Positions 4,901 through 21,613 of a stretch of 64,000 nucleotides of DNA are shown piece by piece. A program made the translations under genes and the position numbers. The notes under the pieces were generated by a model. That model was not told the origin of the DNA. It worked only from the letters and a program-made list of their open reading frames with translations, and searched no databases. Each line of letters opens with the position of its first letter. The stretch's first letter is position 1. The DNA is taken from positions 124,001 to 188,000 of the IMG/VR virus record IMGVR_UViG_3300025770_000870; one strand, given 5' to 3'.

Positions 4901-6505
4901 CTATAAGTTTATTTTAATTGTTTTATATGGGTATTTTCGTTTATCATACATACGTGCTCTCTCTTTGAAATGTCTATATAATATATTATTCATATTCTTC
5001 GGATCAAAAACATCTACTAAGTCAAATATCATAGCCTTTGTCTTATCCGTGTGTAAACGTAAGGCTCTACCAATTGATTGTATTATAATTTGCTCTGATT
5101 TGAAAGAATCTACAAATATCACATTAAATATAGCATTAATAGATACACCAGTTGATAGTGTACCATAAGAAGCAACTAATACTCTAACTTTACCATCAGT
5201 TTCCTCCATTTGTTTCTTAATAACTTCCCTCTTTTTACCCGATACACCACCATCAATATAATAAAATTCTTTATCTGGTAATTCCTCTGATAATTTATTC
5301 ATTATCTTTTGACCATATTCAATCGTGTGAAATAATAAAAGTGTATTTGATTCACATTTATCAACTATCTTCTTGATAAAGTCTAATCTTTTATCCGAAA
5401 CATGAATATATTCCTTTTCTATTTGAAAAGCTTCTTTACCATAACCACCTTTCCTTATTTGTTCCATTCTATCTGCGAATTCTAAGTCATTATGATTCAT
5501 AATGACAGCCTTTATTTCCATAGCTGATATTATACCCTTCTTCTTTAATTCATCAGCAGAAACTTCTGTTATCTTAGGACCTAAAACTGATTGTATTGTT
5601 AGTATTTCACAAGTATCATCCTCAGGGAATGTACCAGATACACCAAACCTTGAATATGCTTTACCAAACGTTCTCTTTAATATACTTAACATCGTTTTTG
5701 CTTTAGCTCCATGTGCCTCATCAGTAACAACTGTGTGAAATTGGTCAAAGAATTCTTTCGGCCATTTTTCTAATGATTGATAAGTTCCGATATAAATATT
5801 AGCATCTTGTGTACCTGTGTGTTTTCTTGGTCTTTCTGACATAACTTCCTCAACCCTTAAATCAAAGGGTACATGAGTTCCTTCTATATGGTCTATCTTT
5901 TTATCATCCATTTCTATTAAATTATTAACACCATGGTTATATTCTACAATATTATCATAAAATTGAGTAACTAATGTTATCGATGGTACTATTATTAGAA
6001 ATTTAGCTTTAGGAGTATGTTTAAGTGTATAAAACATAACAATTGATATGATTAATGATTTACCACCTGATGTAGCAACCTCAGCCATACAATATCTATT
6101 CTTTAATATTTTGTAAGCTGATTCAACTTGGTGGTCATAAGGTATAAATGGTATCCAAGTACCATCTTTTTTCTTAACTTTATGTTCTTTAAAAAATTCT
6201 TTACAAAAATCATGAACTTTTTCTAAGGTAACATCTCTATTTAATGGGAAATCTTCTTTATTTTCTAATATAAAAGGTGCTCCGATTTCTTTACAACCTT
6301 TCAAAGCTTCTTTCCAAAGACCGATGTTTATTCTACCGTCCTTAAAATATGATTGTTGTCCATTCCAAACACCCATCTTGAATGCTGGCATATATCGATA
6401 ACCTTTAACGTGTCTAGATAACCACAAATCCATTTGGTGGTATTCGATTCTCGTAGCTTCACTTACGACAATTTCTTCTGTTTCTTTATCATATCTAAAC
6501 TTCAT
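4901..6505 (-). CDS. uvsW: UvsW-like SF2 DNA helicase
   Basis: Walker A-like ATSGGKS, DEAH box, SGT motif III, QSIGRALR motif VI; T4 UvsW-like N-terminus (YRYMPAFKMGVWNG). Confidence 0.9.
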   Translation of the reverse strand: MKFRYDKETEEIVVSEATRIEYHQMDLWLSRHVKGYRYMPAFKMGVWNGQQSYFKDGRINIGLWKEALKGCKEIGAPFILENKEDFPLNRDVTLEKVHDFCKEFFKEHKVKKKDGTWIPFIPYDHQVESAYKILKNRYCMAEVATSGGKSLIISIVMFYTLKHTPKAKFLIIVPSITLVTQFYDNIVEYNHGVNNLIEMDDKKIDHIEGTHVPFDLRVEEVMSERPRKHTGTQDANIYIGTYQSLEKWPKEFFDQFHTVVTDEAHGAKAKTMLSILKRTFGKAYSRFGVSGTFPEDDTCEILTIQSVLGPKITEVSADELKKKGIISAMEIKAVIMNHNDLEFADRMEQIRKGGYGKEAFQIEKEYIHVSDKRLDFIKKIVDKCESNTLLLFHTIEYGQKIMNKLSEELPDKEFYYIDGGVSGKKREVIKKQMEETDGKVRVLVASYGTLSTGVSINAIFNVIFVDSFKSEQIIIQSIGRALRLHTDKTKAMIFDLVDVFDPKNMNNILYRHFKERARMYDKRKYPYKTIKINL

Positions 6506-13696: not shown

Positions 13697-14455
13697 ATGC
13701 TAAATTATAAAGAGTATTTAAAGGAGGCCCAAGATAATCAAGTCGTTGTGTTGGATGATGGACAAGGTGGTAATATGTTTAAGACTGTTAAAAATGGTAG
13801 TAAGAACTCAATTACTTATCTTAATGCTGTTATAAAAAGGTTTATCGAAAGTGTTTATGGATCATCTGGGTTTGTTTATGGTAAACATACTGATATATTT
13901 ATCGATAATAAGATAATTAATGGTGAGTATATATCAAAGATGGTTAATAATTACACCATTTTTAAAAATGTGATAAGAATTAATAATATTAAAGAGGAAG
14001 AATCTTTTTATAATTTTATGTTATCTAATCTGAATAATATTTATTCACCAAATGGTAAATTCTTTTTAGAACAATCATTACCTATTTTAATAAACACAAC
14101 TAGAAGGGGAAATGTACTTGAAAAAATGGCTAAGGAATCCTTTTTAAAGTATTCTAAAGAAAAAGATATCGAGATTACTATACAAAACCCTTCTGTTGAT
14201 GAAGATATAAACGGTGTTGATTTCAAATTCTTATCCAATGGTAGAAGTTTTACTGTTCAAGTAAAGCCATTTACTGATTATAAGTATATTGGTGATAAAA
14301 TTTTCATAAAGACAGAAGGATCTTTATCATTGAATACAAACTACTTGATACTATGTGATGGTAAGAATTGTATTAAATTAAGAAATACACCCTCTAATCC
14401 AGTTAAAATAAAAGGTAATACTTTTATTTCAAGTAAATCTAATCTACTTATTTAA
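13697..14455 (+). CDS. PD-(D/E)xK-like nuclease-fold protein with CTS-like N-terminus
   Basis: EDINGVDFKF...FTVQVKP pattern; N-terminus MLNYKEYLKE; TTAATATATA at 13682-13691. Confidence 0.55.
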   Translation: MLNYKEYLKEAQDNQVVVLDDGQGGNMFKTVKNGSKNSITYLNAVIKRFIESVYGSSGFVYGKHTDIFIDNKIINGEYISKMVNNYTIFKNVIRINNIKEEESFYNFMLSNLNNIYSPNGKFFLEQSLPILINTTRRGNVLEKMAKESFLKYSKEKDIEITIQNPSVDEDINGVDFKFLSNGRSFTVQVKPFTDYKYIGDKIFIKTEGSLSLNTNYLILCDGKNCIKLRNTPSNPVKIKGNTFISSKSNLLI

Positions 14456-15770
14456 ATCCACCGAATATATCCATTACCACACTCAATCTTCTTGTTATTT
14501 CTGGCATACCTAATGGTTCAATAATAGAATTAATTGGTGATAGTATTGATTTCTCAAATTGTATATCATAATCTATCTCAGGAGCAAATTCAATCGGGTA
14601 AGACCCTCTAGCATAAGCAAATGTGGAATTAACTGATTTATCTTTACAGATATAATATTTAATCTTTGTACCAGATTTCATAAATTCATACTTATCTTGT
14701 AATTTCTTATCATTGTTCAATAAGTAATTATGATAAGCGGCCGCTTTAACAGCAAAGTGAGCTCCACTTATAAATTGTAATGGTAATGTTTTATCATTTA
14801 AAACTTTCTCATCATATTTATTACAAGATGATTGCATTGCGATATCATCAACATCAGCCAATTCAAATTCCTTTCTAAGACCTTTTACCAATTTAAGTAA
14901 ATCCTTTATATTGAATGTATCGGGATTCTCAAATAAATACTCTACTATCCCAACAATCTTATCACGAGCAAAGGCTGGTGTGGATGACCTAACAAGTTCA
15001 ACTCCTTTAGGATAAATATATTTCAATCTATCATATGGAATACCATCCTCATATAAAATATGTTGTATGTATTTTTTCTTAGCAATATTTATAATTGATT
15101 CTGATATTCTTTCAAGTTCAAAATCTTCTTTGTTTTCAACACCATATGATTCTGCGTGTTTATCTAAACAATCTTTGAAGTAACCCTCATATTTTATTTG
15201 GTCAACTCCTAATATAAAATCAACCTCAGTAGACCAGTTCCAGATAATATCATTTGTTAAAACTCCATCATCTATCATCTTATTTAACTTCCTATCTTTC
15301 ACGAAGTTACCATCTATTAAAACTAACCCATAATCTTCTTTCAGAAGTTCTGTAAATTCCGTGATATCTTTTGACATACCCAAATAATTTGGATTATCTG
15401 TTTCTATCAAATCTCTTGATAGTATAATAAATTTCTTATCAATTGAAGATAGATATTCATCGTTAAATACTTGATCTCTCCAAGTACAATGGTCCATACA
15501 AGGTTTGAATGAAACAAAAATTGAATCGGTATCACCATAGATACTAACATCCTCTTTCGTATCAATTGGTGTGATATCTTTTATATTTAATTGTTTGTGT
15601 AGCTCAGTATCAAGATGCCATTGATTATACCAATAATCTTGGTTATCATCATCCATCTTTCTAGTCAATTCTCTACCCTCTGCTGTTATAGTACCTGCAA
15701 CGTGGTTGTTATAAAGTATGAAGTATGGTGTTGCGAAGGCTCCATAAGAACCATTCAATACAAGTTTTAG
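14448..15770 (-). CDS. Family B DNA polymerase, C-terminal portion (second half of motif B, motif C and thumb); no usable start codon upstream of the invariant Lys
   Basis: LKLVLNGSYG (frame open up to an in-frame TGA at 15773-15771), GTITAEGR, YGDTDS, AKKKY, KGVELVRSS, YDIQFEK. Confidence 0.93.
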   Translation of the reverse strand, partial: LKLVLNGSYGAFATPYFILYNNHVAGTITAEGRELTRKMDDDNQDYWYNQWHLDTELHKQLNIKDITPIDTKEDVSIYGDTDSIFVSFKPCMDHCTWRDQVFNDEYLSSIDKKFIILSRDLIETDNPNYLGMSKDITEFTELLKEDYGLVLIDGNFVKDRKLNKMIDDGVLTNDIIWNWSTEVDFILGVDQIKYEGYFKDCLDKHAESYGVENKEDFELERISESIINIAKKKYIQHILYEDGIPYDRLKYIYPKGVELVRSSTPAFARDKIVGIVEYLFENPDTFNIKDLLKLVKGLRKEFELADVDDIAMQSSCNKYDEKVLNDKTLPLQFISGAHFAVKAAAYHNYLLNNDKKLQDKYEFMKSGTKIKYYICKDKSVNSTFAYARGSYPIEFAPEIDYDIQFEKSILSPINSIIEPLGMPEITRRLSVVMDIFGGFK

Positions 15771-15807
15771 TCATTTACCCCCACTTAAAATAAAGCGGGG
15801 GTGATTA
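15768..15807 (-). other. 40-nt coding gap in polymerase motif B, a candidate ribosomal bypass element
   Basis: mRNA reads CUU|UAA UC ACCCCCGCUU UAUUUU AAGUGGGGGU AAA UGA CUA|AAA; 10-bp hairpin at 15777-15802; removing 40 nt restores QLALKLVLNGSYG. Confidence 0.8.
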
Positions 15808-15866
15808 AAGAGCGAGTTGAAGGGCATTGTAGTAATCTACTTCCTTTTTCAACTCGCTCGCTTTAA
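15805..15866 (-). other. Long RNA hairpin overlapping the putative take-off and stop codons
   Basis: UUAAAG-CG-AGCGAGUUGAA pairs with UUCAACUCGCU-CUUUAA (6 bp + 11 bp), plus an inner GUAG/CUAC stem. Confidence 0.8.
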
Positions 15867-15909
15867 TTTTTAATGACTCGATTTTTTTTATTTTTTCGGT
15901 TTTTGTCAT
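15805..15909 (-). CDS. 34-aa polymerase leader ORF (fingers helix and first half of motif B)
   Basis: MTKTEKIKKIESLKIKASELKKEVDYYNALQLAL*; the end DYYNALQLAL matches the D-x2-Q-x-A-x-(K) part of PolB motif B; missed by the ORF track. Confidence 0.88.
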   Translation of the reverse strand: MTKTEKIKKIESLKIKASELKKEVDYYNALQLAL

Positions 15910-15974
15910 ATTTAATAAATTTGTTATAAAGGGTACTTATACATTTTGATATATAAATAAACCTCTTAAAGTAT

Positions 15975-16061
15975 ATGATAAAGGAAGAAAAAGTTTCAGT
16001 AAAAATCGGACCACGTAACATAAAATATTTTAATATGTGTGGATATGATGTTACACTTTAG
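15975..16061 (+). pseudogene. N-terminal stub of a homing-endonuclease-like gene
   Basis: MIKEEKVSVKIGPRNIKYFNMCGYDVTL* resembles the stub at 10761 and typical phage free-standing endonuclease N-termini. Confidence 0.5.
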
Positions 16062-16433
16062 TCAGGCGCAATTTGGTCAGATAACAGAACTATACGCCTA
16101 TATGGTATTTGTTATGCTGATTGATAACCACTTATATTCTCACCATCATAATAGTCGATACCTATCCAATTTTCATAATCTTCTACATTCACGTTTATAT
16201 AATTCCCATTGTGGTAATAATTCACCAGGTATAATAATAAACAATATAGGATCTGCCATTAGCTCTGTACCTCTTTTAACCTTTGTTTGTTTTGATTTTA
16301 ATTTTACAATATCAACCTTTGATACATTATCAACTCCATATCTCTCTAAACAGGTTTCTTTTATTTTAGATATGATTGATTTTTTATTTATCTTATATTG
16401 ATTATAGTAATGGAAATAGTAGTAACCTATCAC
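16060..16433 (-). pseudogene. Degenerate HNH-type homing endonuclease fragment
   Basis: KIKETCLERYGVDNVSK repeat motif, WELYKRECRRL, then frameshifted ENWIGIDYYDGENI; multiple stops. Confidence 0.6.
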
Positions 16434-16495
16434 TATTTGATTAATCAGATATATTATATTTTAAATTTAATATATAATAAAAATAACAGTATCAA

Positions 16496-16879
16496 ATGAG
16501 GTTAAAGAAGTTTAATAGTTTCAAAATTAATGAATCAGAAGAGTTGATGGAAACTCCTGTTGAGACTGGTAGCAAAGCATCTACATTAACTGGTGAGGTT
16601 ACTCTTTATAGACTCACTTCTCATCCGGTTGTTGATCTTTCTTCACCTGGTGAGTATTATGTATGTGATAAAGGTGATATCGACCCTTCTATATTAGATA
16701 AGAAAGAAAGTTCTGAGTTATATTTAATTACGGTTACTTGTGATTCTTCTAATATTGACTTAGATAAATCTGAAATGGAGATTGCTAACTTAGGAAACGA
16801 TTCTATCGTAGCAGTTAAAGATGATAATGTTTGTAAGGTTATTAGTGTTACTCCTTATGGAAACAATCCAGTAGATTAA
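16496..16879 (+). CDS. Hypothetical protein with CTS-like N-terminus
   Basis: MRLKKFNSFKINE; TTAATATATA at 16467-16476. Confidence 0.75.
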   Translation: MRLKKFNSFKINESEELMETPVETGSKASTLTGEVTLYRLTSHPVVDLSSPGEYYVCDKGDIDPSILDKKESSELYLITVTCDSSNIDLDKSEMEIANLGNDSIVAVKDDNVCKVISVTPYGNNPVD

Positions 16880-18096: not shown

Positions 18097-19116
18097 TTAT
18101 ATATTAAATTGTGAATTTACAATTTCAATAGATTTGCTTAATCTATCTCTCCAATTACCACCCACTTCTATATAATTACAATTGTACTTTTCCAATTCTG
18201 ATTTAATAACATTATAATGTTCCATCCTTTCTTCTAAAAACTGTCGTGTTCCGTCTTGAACACCATCACAATCAGGTTTCAATAGTAAGTATAAATCATA
18301 ATTACTATTTTTATATACTTTATCTAGTAATATGTTTTCAATACTTTTATAACCATTTGGAAAATACATTTTTGAGAAGAGGTATGTTGTTATATCCTCT
18401 GTATCACAGAATAATAATTTATTGGATGTCTTTATTTTTTGATTTTCCAATTCTTGTCGACCAACAGATATTGGGATAAAGTCTTCTATTCCTATTTTAT
18501 TACCATTTCTTTCAAATACAGTTCTGCCATATTCCTCAACAAAATTTGTGTTATAGTATTTAGCTAAATTTTCACTCATTGTTGATTTCCCAACAGATTC
18601 CGGCCCCATAATAACAATTCTCTTAACGAAGTAGGGTTTTATTTCATCCGGTATAAATTCCCAACTATCAAAGGGGTTAGTTCTTACTTTAGTTCCTGAT
18701 ATAGGAAATTTCTTTCTTTCTTTATCAACTAGATAGTGTTTTATACCCAAATATTTAGCAAAATCATCACCGTAATTCTCAGAAGTGAATACACAATCTA
18801 ATTTACCAACAAATTTATAAACAAATGGAACCCAATAAGAATAAAATTCATCAAGTGATTTACATTCGTGTTCATATTGTGGCATCTCACTATCATCAAC
18901 AGAGTGTATTATGACATTTGGGTTACTTTCATATATTTCTCGTAAAGATTTTACTCTTAATTTACCAGGGATTGTTTGTGTAGGATTATGACAAGCTAAA
19001 ACATGAACAACTTCCGAATTTTCCAAAGCGGTGTCTATTAAATAAAGGTGCCCGGTGTGTAATCCGTAGAATTTACCCAATACTAAACTACTTTTGTACT
19101 TTTTATCCATTTCCAT
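18097..19116 (-). CDS. nadR: Bifunctional NadR-type NMN adenylyltransferase and ribosylnicotinamide kinase
   Basis: GKFYGLHTGH (HxGH), FTSENYG, Walker A GPESVGKST, EEYGR, CDT, YDLYLLLKPD...DGTR; no HTH domain. Confidence 0.92.
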   Translation of the reverse strand: MEMDKKYKSSLVLGKFYGLHTGHLYLIDTALENSEVVHVLACHNPTQTIPGKLRVKSLREIYESNPNVIIHSVDDSEMPQYEHECKSLDEFYSYWVPFVYKFVGKLDCVFTSENYGDDFAKYLGIKHYLVDKERKKFPISGTKVRTNPFDSWEFIPDEIKPYFVKRIVIMGPESVGKSTMSENLAKYYNTNFVEEYGRTVFERNGNKIGIEDFIPISVGRQELENQKIKTSNKLLFCDTEDITTYLFSKMYFPNGYKSIENILLDKVYKNSNYDLYLLLKPDCDGVQDGTRQFLEERMEHYNVIKSELEKYNCNYIEVGGNWRDRLSKSIEIVNSQFNI

Positions 19117-19631
19117 AATCCAATTGATGCTAATATTAAGAATAAACCATATACATATGATGATACGTCTAAGCCATTTGATGAGAATAATACTATTAAT
19201 AGAATGTCATTTATAATCCAAAGAATCCAAGCTTCTATTTTCTTCTTCACTAATAGGAATGTAGCCATAACACCCAATGTCATTACAGCAGAGTCTAGAA
19301 ATGGCATATTACCACCATATTCACTTGTTATACAAAACGTGGTCATGTATAGAATAATGGTGCTGGTTGTTAGATATCCTAATTGCTTTTTATTTAACCA
19401 ACTAATAGCCAATTCTTCTTTTGGTTTGCTCCAGTTTATCCAACCTAGTATAGATTGGACTAGAAATACACCTTGTAAAACTAAATCACCAAGTAAGTTA
19501 TGGTTGTAAAAGATAACAGAGTAAAAGATAACTCCTACGATACCAAATGGCCAACATAATATGTTATCTTTTACTGTTAGAATAACAGCTAGTAACGTGA
19601 ATAAAACAGCTACTGCCTCAATAATATCCAT
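19083..19631 (-). CDS. pnuC: PnuC-family nicotinamide riboside or thiamine transporter
   Basis: Multiple TM helices; CWPFGIVG, GWINW, FLDSAVM, KKKIEAWILWIIND. Confidence 0.92.
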   Translation of the reverse strand: MDIIEAVAVLFTLLAVILTVKDNILCWPFGIVGVIFYSVIFYNHNLLGDLVLQGVFLVQSILGWINWSKPKEELAISWLNKKQLGYLTTSTIILYMTTFCITSEYGGNMPFLDSAVMTLGVMATFLLVKKKIEAWILWIINDILLIVLFSSNGLDVSSYVYGLFLILASIGLWKWIKSTKVV

Positions 19632-21613
19632 TAAATCTTAAATTTAATTGTAGCGAAGAAGTTGAATGGTGGATTAACAAAGAAGTGTCTATCTGTACCA
19701 ACTGCGTATCCATTAGTGTAATAACTTTCATTAGTTATGTTATTTACTCTAATACTTAAACTGTGTTGTTTATAGAATTTATAATCAACTTGAGCATTTA
19801 ATACCACAAAATCTGGTGTTGTGAGTGTGTTCTCCATATCAATATAAGACTCTGAGTGGTACTTCACATCAAATCCAACTCTTATTCTATCTTTTGAATC
19901 TTTAATCACCACACCTTGGTTAATTATCAAATTAGGTGTGTATAATGGACTAAATTCTTTCCCATCATCATTAATTCTGTTATAAGAGTATGATGATGTA
20001 TTAACTAATAATAAGTTAATTTTCTTTTTACTAAATAAACTTAAAGTCATATCTAATTCAATACCACTTCTAAAAGAGTTTTCAACATTAGTCATTAACG
20101 GTAAACCATTTGAACCAATTGCTCCTAATAATGTTATTTCATTTTTGAAATCCATATAGTATAGATTACCTTGTAACTTAAAGTTATCTAATGTTATATT
20201 AGTACCTAATTCATAATCAACAACCGATTCTGGTTTAACATCTATGTAACTAATAGGATCATCTTCTCCCATAAAAATATCATTTCTTGTTGGTTCTCTT
20301 TGTGATTGACCAACAGAAGCATAGAAGTTATAGTGTTTACATTTCGTGAACATTATACCACCTTTTGGGTTGAAGAATGTCCATTCAAATGGTGCCATAT
20401 CCATAGTACCTTGATACTTGAAATCAACGTATCTAACTTGAGCATCTCCGAAAAGAGTAAACTTCTTTATATCATATCCGAATTTAACAAATGATGATAC
20501 TTCGTTTTTAAGTCCTTTATTAGAATATAGTTCATCTGTGTTTGCTAATACAGTCATAGCATGTCGTCTATCATACATATTACCACTAACACCAATATTC
20601 AATCTATATTTATTACCAGTTAAGTTATAGTTAGAGGTTAATCCATAGAAGTTAGAACCTAAATTGAAGTTAAGAACATCATCCCCTCCACCAAGTGGTA
20701 GTAAATCTAATCCCCAATCTCCATCTAATCTATTATAGAAAGCGGTAGTCGTTAAATTTGACTTGTTAAAAAAGTGTTTGTGTTTTAAGATAACCATACT
20801 TTGTGTAAAGTCGTCATTTTCTCTAGTAGTATTATAGTTAGTTCTTGGTTCTGATTTTATATCATCTTCTGAAACTGCGAACCAAGCCATTTCATTAGTT
20901 GTGTGTCCATTGAATGCTGTTATTTTAACAAAATCCTTTTCTCCATAATAACCACCACTTAAAAAGAATGATTGTCCTTCACCACCTGAGTTATATTTGT
21001 ATCCATCACTCGCGTAATTTGAATATCTAGTATAAAAGGCTGTTTTATTTTTTAGTAATCCTGTTGAGTTTTCAATACTAACTCTATAAGTATTAAATGA
21101 TCCATATCCAATTTGTCCTTCTGTTCCTTTCTTTAATCCCGTTGGTGATTCAAAATTAATAGAACCAGCATATGAGGAAACACCGTTTGTTGATGTACCA
21201 ACACCACGTTGTATCTGCATTGACCTAATTGAGTTTGTAAAATCTGGGTAATTTGAGAAATATACACCTTGGTCCTCTGGTTCATTAAGAGGAACCCCAT
21301 CGAGTGTCATATTAATTCTAGTTTGGTCAATACCTCTCAATCTAAAGTAAGTATATCCCATATTGTGACCGCCATCTGTTGATGATGTTACACTTGGTGT
21401 TGTGTTTAATAACAACGGTAATTCTTGTGTATGATACATAACATCTATATCATCTTTACTGATTGTTTTCTGAGTGACTGGTGTTTTAGATCCAGCTCTA
21501 ATTCCTTGTATAGTAACTTCTTCAATTTGCACCATTGATGTGTCAACCTTTAGAGTATCCTGTGAATACGATGTTGATGTTGCTAATAAAAATAAAAATA
21601 GTAATTTCTTCAT
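19631..21613 (-). CDS. TonB-dependent outer-membrane receptor (Bacteroidota vitamin-uptake type)
   Basis: Signal peptide; plug with GYTYFRLRGIDQTRIN...QIQRGVGTSTNG; beta-barrel ending in alternating aromatic residues; 1-nt overlap with pnuC. Confidence 0.92.
   Translation of the reverse strand: MKKLLFLFLLATSTSYSQDTLKVDTSMVQIEEVTIQGIRAGSKTPVTQKTISKDDIDVMYHTQELPLLLNTTPSVTSSTDGGHNMGYTYFRLRGIDQTRINMTLDGVPLNEPEDQGVYFSNYPDFTNSIRSMQIQRGVGTSTNGVSSYAGSINFESPTGLKKGTEGQIGYGSFNTYRVSIENSTGLLKNKTAFYTRYSNYASDGYKYNSGGEGQSFFLSGGYYGEKDFVKITAFNGHTTNEMAWFAVSEDDIKSEPRTNYNTTRENDDFTQSMVILKHKHFFNKSNLTTTAFYNRLDGDWGLDLLPLGGGDDVLNFNLGSNFYGLTSNYNLTGNKYRLNIGVSGNMYDRRHAMTVLANTDELYSNKGLKNEVSSFVKFGYDIKKFTLFGDAQVRYVDFKYQGTMDMAPFEWTFFNPKGGIMFTKCKHYNFYASVGQSQREPTRNDIFMGEDDPISYIDVKPESVVDYELGTNITLDNFKLQGNLYYMDFKNEITLLGAIGSNGLPLMTNVENSFRSGIELDMTLSLFSKKKINLLLVNTSSYSYNRINDDGKEFSPLYTPNLIINQGVVIKDSKDRIRVGFDVKYHSESYIDMENTLTTPDFVVLNAQVDYKFYKQHSLSIRVNNITNESYYTNGYAVGTDRHFFVNPPFNFFATIKFKI

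Follow-up and report, generated by a model that had tools for sequence, protein, structure and literature searches.

The stretch of marine phage DNA analysed here (the window: 64,000 nucleotides, positions 124,001 to 188,000 of IMG/VR record IMGVR_UViG_3300025770_000870) carries, next to its DNA polymerase gene, the broken remains of a free-standing homing endonuclease gene of the DUF7487 family. In related phages the intact gene always comes with a short hairpin insert inside polymerase motif B, so that the two look like one mobile cassette, as in mobA/gene 60 of phage T4 but in a different gene. A first-pass annotation had proposed from the sequence alone that a decayed HNH-type endonuclease and a 40-nt polymerase insert might form such a cassette. 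We examined the two grounds on which it would have been refuted, a non-nuclease origin of the fragments and a lack of correlation between insert and endonuclease among relatives, and neither refuted it. Our data thus support this reading, to which we assign a probability of about 0.75, although the cleavage target, protection by the insert and ribosomal bypass itself are inferred.

Remnants of a DUF7487-family gene beside the polymerase

The polymerase gene encodes the C-terminal half of a split family-B enzyme whose N-terminal half lies 96 kb away. Its main coding part occupies 14448-15767 on the minus strand (Pfam DNA_pol_B, E 5e-15; phrog_262 DNA polymerase, E 7.8e-44, profile positions 520-839), with the stop codon at 14450-14448. 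This is the only polB in the 242-kb record and in a 483-kb record that carries this same polymerase gene; the 483-kb record has no PolA. The ATG at 15909 opens a 34-codon leader (MTKTEKIKK...YYNALQLAL; 15808-15909, minus strand), which is conserved in all 58 related loci, and a 65-nt divergent spacer (15910-15974) separates it from the ATG of the endonuclease stub.

The stub, on the plus strand at 15975-16058 (MIKEEKVSVKIGPRNIKYFNMCGYDVTL, followed by TAG at 16059-16061), aligned to residues 1-28 of 12 intact proteins encoded upstream of the polymerase in relatives, a region with the N-terminal module MIKExK..V.I..RN..YY..LGY. Identity was 36-63% by locus and 54% to the ORF of L030, one of the related loci. 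Its profile score alone was weak (phrog_5104 positions 1-27, E 0.06), but its position and orientation are identical to those of the intact genes. A minus-strand open frame at 16460-16176 contains ETCLERYGVDNVSK at 16358-16317 and matched Pfam DUF7487 (PF24308) at E 7.6e-7 (29.7 bits, cut-off 27) and phrog_3339 'homing endonuclease' at E 7.6e-6. Homologous over 16391-16176, it represents the last KYGV repeat plus the linker, residues ~220-292 of intact proteins, with residues 241-292 of the L030 ORF aligned. After a frameshift, a second minus-strand frame (16115-16258, YENWIGIDYYDGENISGYQS) continues the homology over 16183-16118, with WIGIDYYDGE at 16168-16139. It aligned to residues 299-320 at 68% identity, and in tblastn showed 65-75% identity to the long-clade (339-389 aa) ORFs and 50-72% to the others.

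Residues ~29-219 (the Cys cluster and most KYGV repeats) and ~321 to the end have no counterpart, the sequence ending just before the HNH motif should start. The window copy is a pseudogene that no longer holds the catalytic part. Interestingly, the stub and the larger piece lie on opposite strands, which simple in-place decay does not explain; either there was an inversion or there are two dead copies, a detail that the first-pass annotation could not evaluate. In a 97-98% identical contig (L009), window positions 16028-16424, which hold the minus-strand fragment, are absent altogether (blastn of locus L007 against L009), marking either ongoing loss or a secondary insertion in the window's lineage. 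A search with tblastn of the 95-aa fragment against 50,697 phage records found no match, and intact homologues were found instead through synteny. An antisense 120-aa ORF at 16039-16401 on the plus strand has no homologues and is taken as spurious.

Intact relatives, their predicted HNH domain and the motif-B insert

In 19 related IMG/VR loci an intact gene (255-389 aa) sits in the same place, divergent from and 43-90 nt upstream of the polymerase C-half gene. These intact neighbours scored 47-87 bits against DUF7487, with E-values of 1e-12 to 3e-24 for the long forms, and the family is large, with 16,252 cluster representatives. Sequence searches alone did not reach HNH models: a profile search of PDB returned only a spurious GpsB hit, and Pfam on the isolated C-terminal domains gave only a faint GmrSD_C hit (E 0.019). 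The HNH assignment therefore rests on the predicted fold and on invariant residues. An AlphaFold (AF2) model of the L030 ORF had a pLDDT of 95.9, and Foldseek matched it with probability 0.97-0.98 to 4h9d (the Gme HNH nicking endonuclease, 0.97) and 4l0k, and also found Cas9 HNH domains, albeit with weak E-values (0.1-0.5) because the domain is small. VIA-align gave a Z of 7.3, and 41 chains reached Z>=5, nearly all HNH and all aligned to residues 280-386. D332, H333, N355, N364 and K367 were invariant in 114 sequences.

Importantly, every locus with this gene has a 36-48-nt hairpin insert inside motif B. Of 43 distinct related loci, 18 have both elements, 12 have the insert only, none has the gene only and 13 have neither (Fisher p 1.6e-4, not tree-corrected). 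Insert-only loci are what persistence after nuclease loss predicts. Both states are scattered over the polymerase tree, where the insert state changes at least 8 times and the nuclease state at least 13 times. The phylogenetically controlled test is, however, underpowered: of 11 independent pairs, about 4 go the same way, 0 the opposite way and about 7 are unchanged (p about 0.125).

Loci L023, L025 and L020 are 90-95% identical and differ by a clean ~860-bp nuclease gene and a 39-nt insert, with the leader between them at only 84%. L014, with an insert after QLA plus the nuclease, and L018, with an insert after NGSY and no nuclease, have identical polymerase tails, and their DNA similarity starts exactly at motif B. 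The nuclease clades also track the insert sites, the long clade going with sites A and B and the short clade with sites C and B2, with one exception each. The closest GenBank relatives, LR745206 and LR756502, have neither element.

Recoding signals around the insert

The 40-nt insert of the window (15768-15807, minus strand) was defined against uninterrupted relatives. The putative take-off codon CTT (15810-15808) is followed directly by the stop TAA (15807-15805), a 10-bp gap hairpin (CCCCCGC...GTGGGGG, 15801-15778), an A/T-rich spacer and the putative landing codon CTA (15770-15768). Reading resumes at AAA (15767-15765), giving KLVLNGSYGAF (motif B) and then motif C, palm and thumb. The CTT/CTA join, both codons specifying Leu, is the only one that restores ALQLALKLVLNGSYG. 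At other sites the pairs are GCT/GCA, GCT/GCT, GTT/GTA, GTT/GTT, GGT/GGT and TCT/TCA, synonymous or identical everywhere except at site C (after NGSY), where the nine such loci lack a match. Inserts after NGSY also lack the upstream stem, so one uniform bypass rule does not fit all inserts.

That upstream stem-loop, with arms at 15859-15848 and 15821-15810, forms a 12-bp stem ending at the take-off codon. It was present in all 16 loci examined that carry the insert at this site and absent from uninterrupted loci. The gap hairpin covaries in 15 loci, and the upstream stem also covaries. Compensatory changes were seen in 9 of 16 base pairs, 95% of cells were paired against 39-52% when slid, and 0/500 shuffles reached the observed value. 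The window RNA folded with z = -6.56, and the downstream frame stays open and conserved in all loci. A genome-wide search for further C-run/G-run hairpin inserts found only a bidirectional terminator at G000 215687; the insert is the only such hairpin inside a gene in the 242-kb record and is therefore not a dispersed repeat. Membership of the group I/II introns or inteins was not supported, as the insert is 40 nt, is not a multiple of 3 and contains stops, and no Rfam family matched in 15400-16700.

Proposed mechanism, alternatives and precedents

We propose that the nuclease cuts or nicks insert-free motif-B DNA of a co-infecting relative, and that recombinational repair copies the nuclease gene, the ~130-nt leader and the insert into the recipient. 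The insert would break up the recognition site and make the carrier immune, whereas the polymerase would still be made because ribosomes take off at CTT before the TAA stop, skip 37 nt and land on CTA, helped by the upstream stem-loop, the gap hairpin and a G-run before the landing site. Once a population is fixed for the cassette, the nuclease would be useless and decay, which is the state seen in the window, as it is for mobA in laboratory T4.

Alternatively, two independent selfish elements might share a hot spot, with endonucleases settling next to the conserved polymerase gene and hairpin inserts invading motif B on their own. The 12 insert-only loci, the non-significant test on independent pairs, a GIY-YIG nuclease that occupies the same slot without any insert in loci L032-34, and other elements hitting this gene (0.5-kb and 1.6-kb insertions at motif C) would agree with this view. 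We consider it unlikely, since 0 of 13 uninterrupted loci against 18 of 30 interrupted ones carry the DUF7487-HNH gene, no independent pair goes the opposite way, nuclease clade correlates with insert site, and divergence islands run exactly from the nuclease gene to the insert. That the fragments are merely chance ORFs in AT-rich intergenic DNA, or a small functional ORF, is very improbable despite their shortness, the weak stub score and the lack of matches in cultured phages: the Pfam hit exceeds the curated cut-off, and three collinear or inverted segments map to successive parts of intact proteins at 48-68% identity.

A further possibility is that the cassette is real but the insert is removed from the RNA, by an unknown mini-intron or hairpin-processing route, or that a 34-aa leader peptide and a re-initiated downstream protein are made. 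Inserts after NGSY, which form one long hairpin with both junctions at its base, and the G-run, which could act as a ribosome-binding site, leave some room for this. However, there is no in-frame start codon after the gap in the window; the only ATG is in the wrong frame, and TTG would delete the motif-B lysine. Nor does splicing explain the matched codons and the stop right after take-off at all sites but the one after NGSY. Three metatranscriptome runs and one DNA run showed no joints, albeit only in contigs from diverged relatives, which makes this weak evidence. We regard this reading, too, as unlikely.

The closest precedent is the T4 MobA element (Bonocora et al. 2011, as summarised in Manning & Atkins, 10.1101/2022.08.31.505936), in which a free-standing HNH nuclease sits next to a split essential replication gene and a short untranslatable insert lies a few dozen codons into the downstream ORF, in a highly conserved motif. 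There, too, the bypass occurs in every phage with the nuclease and in several that lost it, the nuclease is pseudogenised in T4 and is replaced by GIY-YIG in some, and the signals comprise matched take-off and landing codons, a stop after take-off, a take-off hairpin, an upstream stem-loop and a G-rich element before landing. In contrast, the target here is polymerase motif B rather than topoisomerase, the gap is 33-45 nt rather than 50, and inserts occupy at least four positions within 24 nt rather than one. The leader is native polymerase sequence (the second fingers helix) rather than an added N-terminal extension, the nuclease gene is divergent and upstream rather than between the two halves as in 39-mobA-60, and hosts are probably marine Bacteroidota-type bacteria. 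The nuclease is not a MobA homologue: hhalign of T4 gp60.1, the C-terminal remnant of MobA, against the family profile gave a probability of 0.1%, and the T4 mobA fragment hits Pfam HNH whereas the HNH of this family is C-terminal.

Apart from the mitochondrial 'byp' elements of Magnusiomyces capitatus, which seem to be numerous 27-55-nt bypass inserts without a linked homing endonuclease, programmed bypass of a long coding gap has so far been known from T4 gene 60 and its homologues, all in topoisomerase genes, a cassette that the most recent survey calls 'unique' (10.1101/2022.08.31.505936). It is somewhat more likely than not that the DUF7487-HNH endonucleases of large marine phages represent a second, independently evolved family of such cassettes, spreading with a transferable module of leader stem-loop, hairpin gap and perhaps a nascent-peptide Ser. 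This would show that gene 60-type ribosome hopping is a general, portable solution for hiding a nuclease target, and that a nuclease with a protective, translationally invisible insert is a recurrent strategy of selfish DNA. If confirmed, the dozens of natural variants, with different sites, gap lengths and codon pairs, would give an independent test set for the rules of take-off, sliding and landing. Such polymerase genes will be called broken or truncated unless the gap is recognised.

Collaborative homing by F-CphI and the psbA group I intron of cyanophage S-PM2 (Zeng et al. 2009, as described in PMC6083498) similarly involves a free-standing nuclease that cleaves the uninterrupted allele of an adjacent gene, and an intervening sequence that protects the carrier and is carried along during repair. 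The insert here is far too small to be a ribozyme intron, and F-CphI belongs to the Endo VII-like DHHRN family, with Cys pairs flanking DHDH, whereas the present family has D-H...N...N without those cysteines. Split gp43 and other fragmented replication genes of T4-related phages (PMC2988022; split nrdA with MobE, PMC3045599) likewise appear to encode an essential enzyme in two genes, with homing endonuclease genes associated with the break. In the clade studied here the split, at the tip of the fingers domain, is conserved in all 58 loci whether or not a nuclease is present, and the nuclease is linked to the motif-B insert, not demonstrably to the split.

Remains of an endonuclease gene upstream of a split polymerase gene

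The sequence under study belongs to a 241,918-bp IMG/VR virus record (G000), and seawater and marine metagenomes from many studies hold the same sequence. A 483-kb record that CheckV rates 98% complete carries this same polymerase gene. The family-B DNA polymerase of the phage is encoded in two genes, separated at the tip of the fingers domain and lying 96 kb apart. The N-terminal half (exonuclease, N-terminal palm and the first fingers helix; a 515-codon frame) is located outside the window at G000:C1:234392-235936 (+), whereas the C-terminal half occupies 15909-14448 on the minus strand of the window. The C-half gene starts with a 34-codon leader (MTKTEKIKK...YYNALQLAL) that ends in TAA. Forty nucleotides later, in another frame, the sequence continues as KLVLNGSYGAF. 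When joined, the two parts give exactly polymerase motif B (Q.A.K...N..YG), and the 40 nt between them are the polymerase insert named in the first-pass annotation.

That annotation had also noted, just upstream of the leader, broken pieces of an endonuclease-like gene, and our analysis confirmed them as real homologues of a gene family. The plus-strand stub (15975-16058) comprises 28 codons followed by TAG. The minus-strand pieces are the open frame 16460-16176 and, after a frameshift, 16258-16115. The longer piece hit Pfam DUF7487 above the curated threshold (E 7.6e-7) as well as PHROG 3339, annotated as homing endonuclease. Mapped onto intact proteins found in relatives, the stub corresponds to residues 1-28 and the minus-strand pieces to residues ~220-292 and ~299-320; everything between, and the whole catalytic tail, is gone. 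Because the stub and the larger piece lie on opposite strands, there was either an inversion or there are two dead copies. Interestingly, a contig 97-98% identical in the flanks (L009) lacks window 16028-16424 altogether, so the remnant is dispensable and probably still eroding. A second truncated DUF7487 copy, with only the N-terminal ~140 residues and no nuclease domain, lies outside the window at G000:C1:197645-198067 (-), between an RNase R-like gene and the scaffold and major capsid genes.

The intact gene in related phages and its predicted HNH fold

To find out what the gene had been, we scanned IMG/VR with the polymerase C-half, which returned 58 loci (designated by L numbers) at 56-100% identity. 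All of them start the C-half gene with the same kind of leader, whether or not a nuclease or an insert is present, so the split polymerase is ancestral to the clade. In 19 loci, an intact ORF of 255-389 aa is transcribed divergently, 43-90 nt upstream of the leader ATG, and begins with the same MIKEEK... as the stub in the window. These ORFs are DUF7487 proteins (Pfam E down to 3e-24; PHROGs 5104, 3339 and 12131, the last two annotated as homing endonuclease). They consist of an N-terminal beta-hairpin module, a Cys cluster, one to six K.T..EKYGV.N repeats, and an invariant C-terminal block W.G.D.Y...YP..DHK.S...G..N......NLC.TK...NS.K.

Although sequence profiles did not reach HNH models, an AlphaFold model (pLDDT 95.9) placed residues 280-386 on HNH nucleases, namely the Gme HNH nicking endonuclease (Foldseek probability 0.97, VIA-align Z 7.3), many Cas9 HNH domains, McrA, PacI, Cap5 and ZRANB3, with 41 chains reaching Z>=5. 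Together with the invariant D-H, N and N residues, this justifies the term HNH-type that the first-pass annotation had used, for the family at least, as the remnant in the window has lost exactly that part. We consider it nearly certain that the fragments are a dead DUF7487/HNH homing endonuclease gene. The family is large, with 16,252 cluster representatives. It is not related to T4 MobA beyond the superfamily, and it lacks the Cys-flanked DHDH motif of the F-CphI/Endo VII family.

Co-occurrence of the nuclease gene with the motif-B insert

The first-pass annotation had proposed that the insert and the endonuclease spread together, to be tested by their co-occurrence across relatives. Motif B is uninterrupted in 17 loci (13 distinct) and in the two closest GenBank genomes, LR745206 and LR756502. 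All other loci carry a 36-48-nt insert with a C-run/G-run hairpin at one of at least four positions: after QLA(L), as in the window (site A), after KLV (site B), after LNG (site B2), or after NGS(Y) (site C). Every locus with the DUF7487-HNH gene has an insert, and no uninterrupted locus has the gene. Among 43 distinct loci, 18 have both, 12 have the insert only, 0 have the gene only, and 13 have neither (Fisher p 1.6e-4, with the window-type remnant counted as nuclease-positive). In the insert-only loci, the upstream neighbor is instead an IF-3 gene, a clamp-like gene, a methylase or purB. Many relatives encode a full translation initiation factor IF-3 (IF3_N + IF3_C, E 1e-16 to 1e-26) immediately upstream of the polymerase C-half gene, for example at L013 5107-5646 (+), with equivalents in L018-L021, L025 and L047; the lineage of the window has a radical SAM gene and a 127-aa unknown ORF there instead.

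The Fisher value ignores relatedness. On a tree of the polymerase tail, the insert state changes at least 8 times, the nuclease state at least 13 times and the site state at least 17 times. Among about 11 independent pairs that differ in the nuclease, the insert changes the same way in about 4, never the opposite way, and does not change in about 7, giving a sign-test p of about 0.125; this test is thus underpowered. Comparisons between near-isogenic genomes were more telling. L014 (site A plus nuclease) and L018 (site C, no nuclease) have identical polymerase tails, and their DNA similarity begins exactly at motif B. L023 and L025 are 95% identical except for a clean ~860-bp nuclease gene, whereas L023 and L020 differ by that gene plus the 39-nt insert. 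The ~135-nt leader between the two is only 84% identical, against 90-95% in the flanks, which is the footprint of a co-converted tract. Furthermore, the two nuclease clades track insert positions: the long forms go with sites A and B and the short forms with sites C and B2, with one exception each.

Two groups of loci carry a GIY-YIG/NUMOD3 nuclease in the same slot, one with an insert (L049) and one, L032-L034 (intact at 5061-5801 (-)), upstream of an uninterrupted motif B. The latter is the only counter-example, and it concerns a different nuclease family. DUF7487-like fragments also lie directly downstream of the polymerase gene in L032-34, L037 and L040. On balance, it is likely that nuclease and insert are, or were, one mobile unit, while protection against this nuclease by the insert is only somewhat more probable than not.

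Probable reading of the interrupted gene and comparison with known cassettes

Since this is the only family-A/B polymerase of the phage, and the frame downstream of the insert stays open and conserved in all loci, the gap must be tolerated. For the window, the only join that restores the consensus motif takes off at CTT (Leu), directly followed by TAA, and lands on CTA (Leu) 37 nt later. At every site except site C, the restoring join likewise has identical or synonymous codons (GCT/GCA, GCT/GCT, GTT/GTA, GTT/GTT, GGT/GGT, TCT/TCA). The gap begins with a 9-12-bp hairpin. In all 16 loci examined with a site-A insert, and in site-B loci, the ~50 nt before take-off form a 9-15-bp stem whose 3' arm ends at the take-off codon; in contrast, uninterrupted loci lack that stem. 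Across 15 loci, 9 of the 16 consensus pairs show compensatory double changes, and 95% of cells pair, against 39-52% when partners are slid; 0 of 500 shuffles reached the observed values. The window's own 126 nt of this region fold at -42.4 kcal/mol (z -6.56). In addition, a leader residue 19 positions before the motif-B Gln (window about 15876-15874 (-), in 'IE-S-LK') is Ser in 18 of 23 insert-bearing distinct loci and in 0 of 14 uninterrupted ones (Fisher 2.4e-6, not tree-corrected). It could be a nascent-peptide signal, or it could be hitch-hiking with the cassette.

Matched codons, a stop after take-off, a take-off hairpin, an upstream stem-loop, a G-rich element before landing and perhaps a nascent-peptide signal are the signals catalogued for gene 60. 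There is no in-frame start after the gap, no matching Rfam family, and no second copy of the hairpin in any other gene; the only other C-run/G-run hairpin in the 242-kb record, at G000:C1:215687-215708 outside the window, is bidirectional and terminator-like and lies between convergent genes. The insert is probably bypassed by ribosomes, although bypass itself remains an inference; the available metatranscriptome contigs were uninformative. The nine loci with an insert after NGSY (L018, L022-L025, L028, L031, L035, L057) do not obey the matched-codon rule, with TAT/TAC against AAC, GAC, TAA, AGC or CAA, and they lack the upstream stem. Their whole gap is one long hairpin of up to 19 bp with both junctions at its base.

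The pattern reproduces, point for point, what Manning and Atkins (10.1101/2022.08.31.505936) describe for the T4 MobA element. That nuclease is pseudogenised in T4 itself, as is also visible in the T4 annotation; it is replaced by GIY-YIG nucleases in some genomes, and there are 'hit-and-run' losses. The pattern also parallels the collaborative homing of F-CphI and the psbA intron. The differences lie in the target (polymerase motif B), the nuclease family and its C-terminal HNH, the divergent placement of the nuclease gene, the multiple insert positions, the shorter gaps, and the leader, which is native polymerase sequence. The same survey found bypass cassettes only in topoisomerase genes and does not mention polymerase, and our literature search found no report of bypass in a phage polymerase. 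While a decayed nuclease gene by itself is ordinary, its linkage to the motif-B insert is what makes this locus valuable. The comparative tests that could be run support the interpretation of a possible MobA/gene 60-style cassette offered by the first-pass annotation, in which the cleavage target, protection by the insert and bypass are inferred, and we put the probability of the explanation as a whole at about 0.75.

Further interruptions of the polymerase C-half occur at motif C (YxDTDS), of ~0.5 kb in L036/L038/L039 and L051 and of ~1.6 kb in L045, L050, L052 and L061-L063. They are probably inteins, introns or additional splits, and the gene is a hot spot for selfish elements. Elsewhere in the window, 18097-21613 (-) holds a block of host-like metabolic genes: a NadR-like nucleotidyltransferase/kinase (AAA_28), a PnuC nicotinamide-mononucleotide transporter, and a TonB-dependent receptor with a plug domain.
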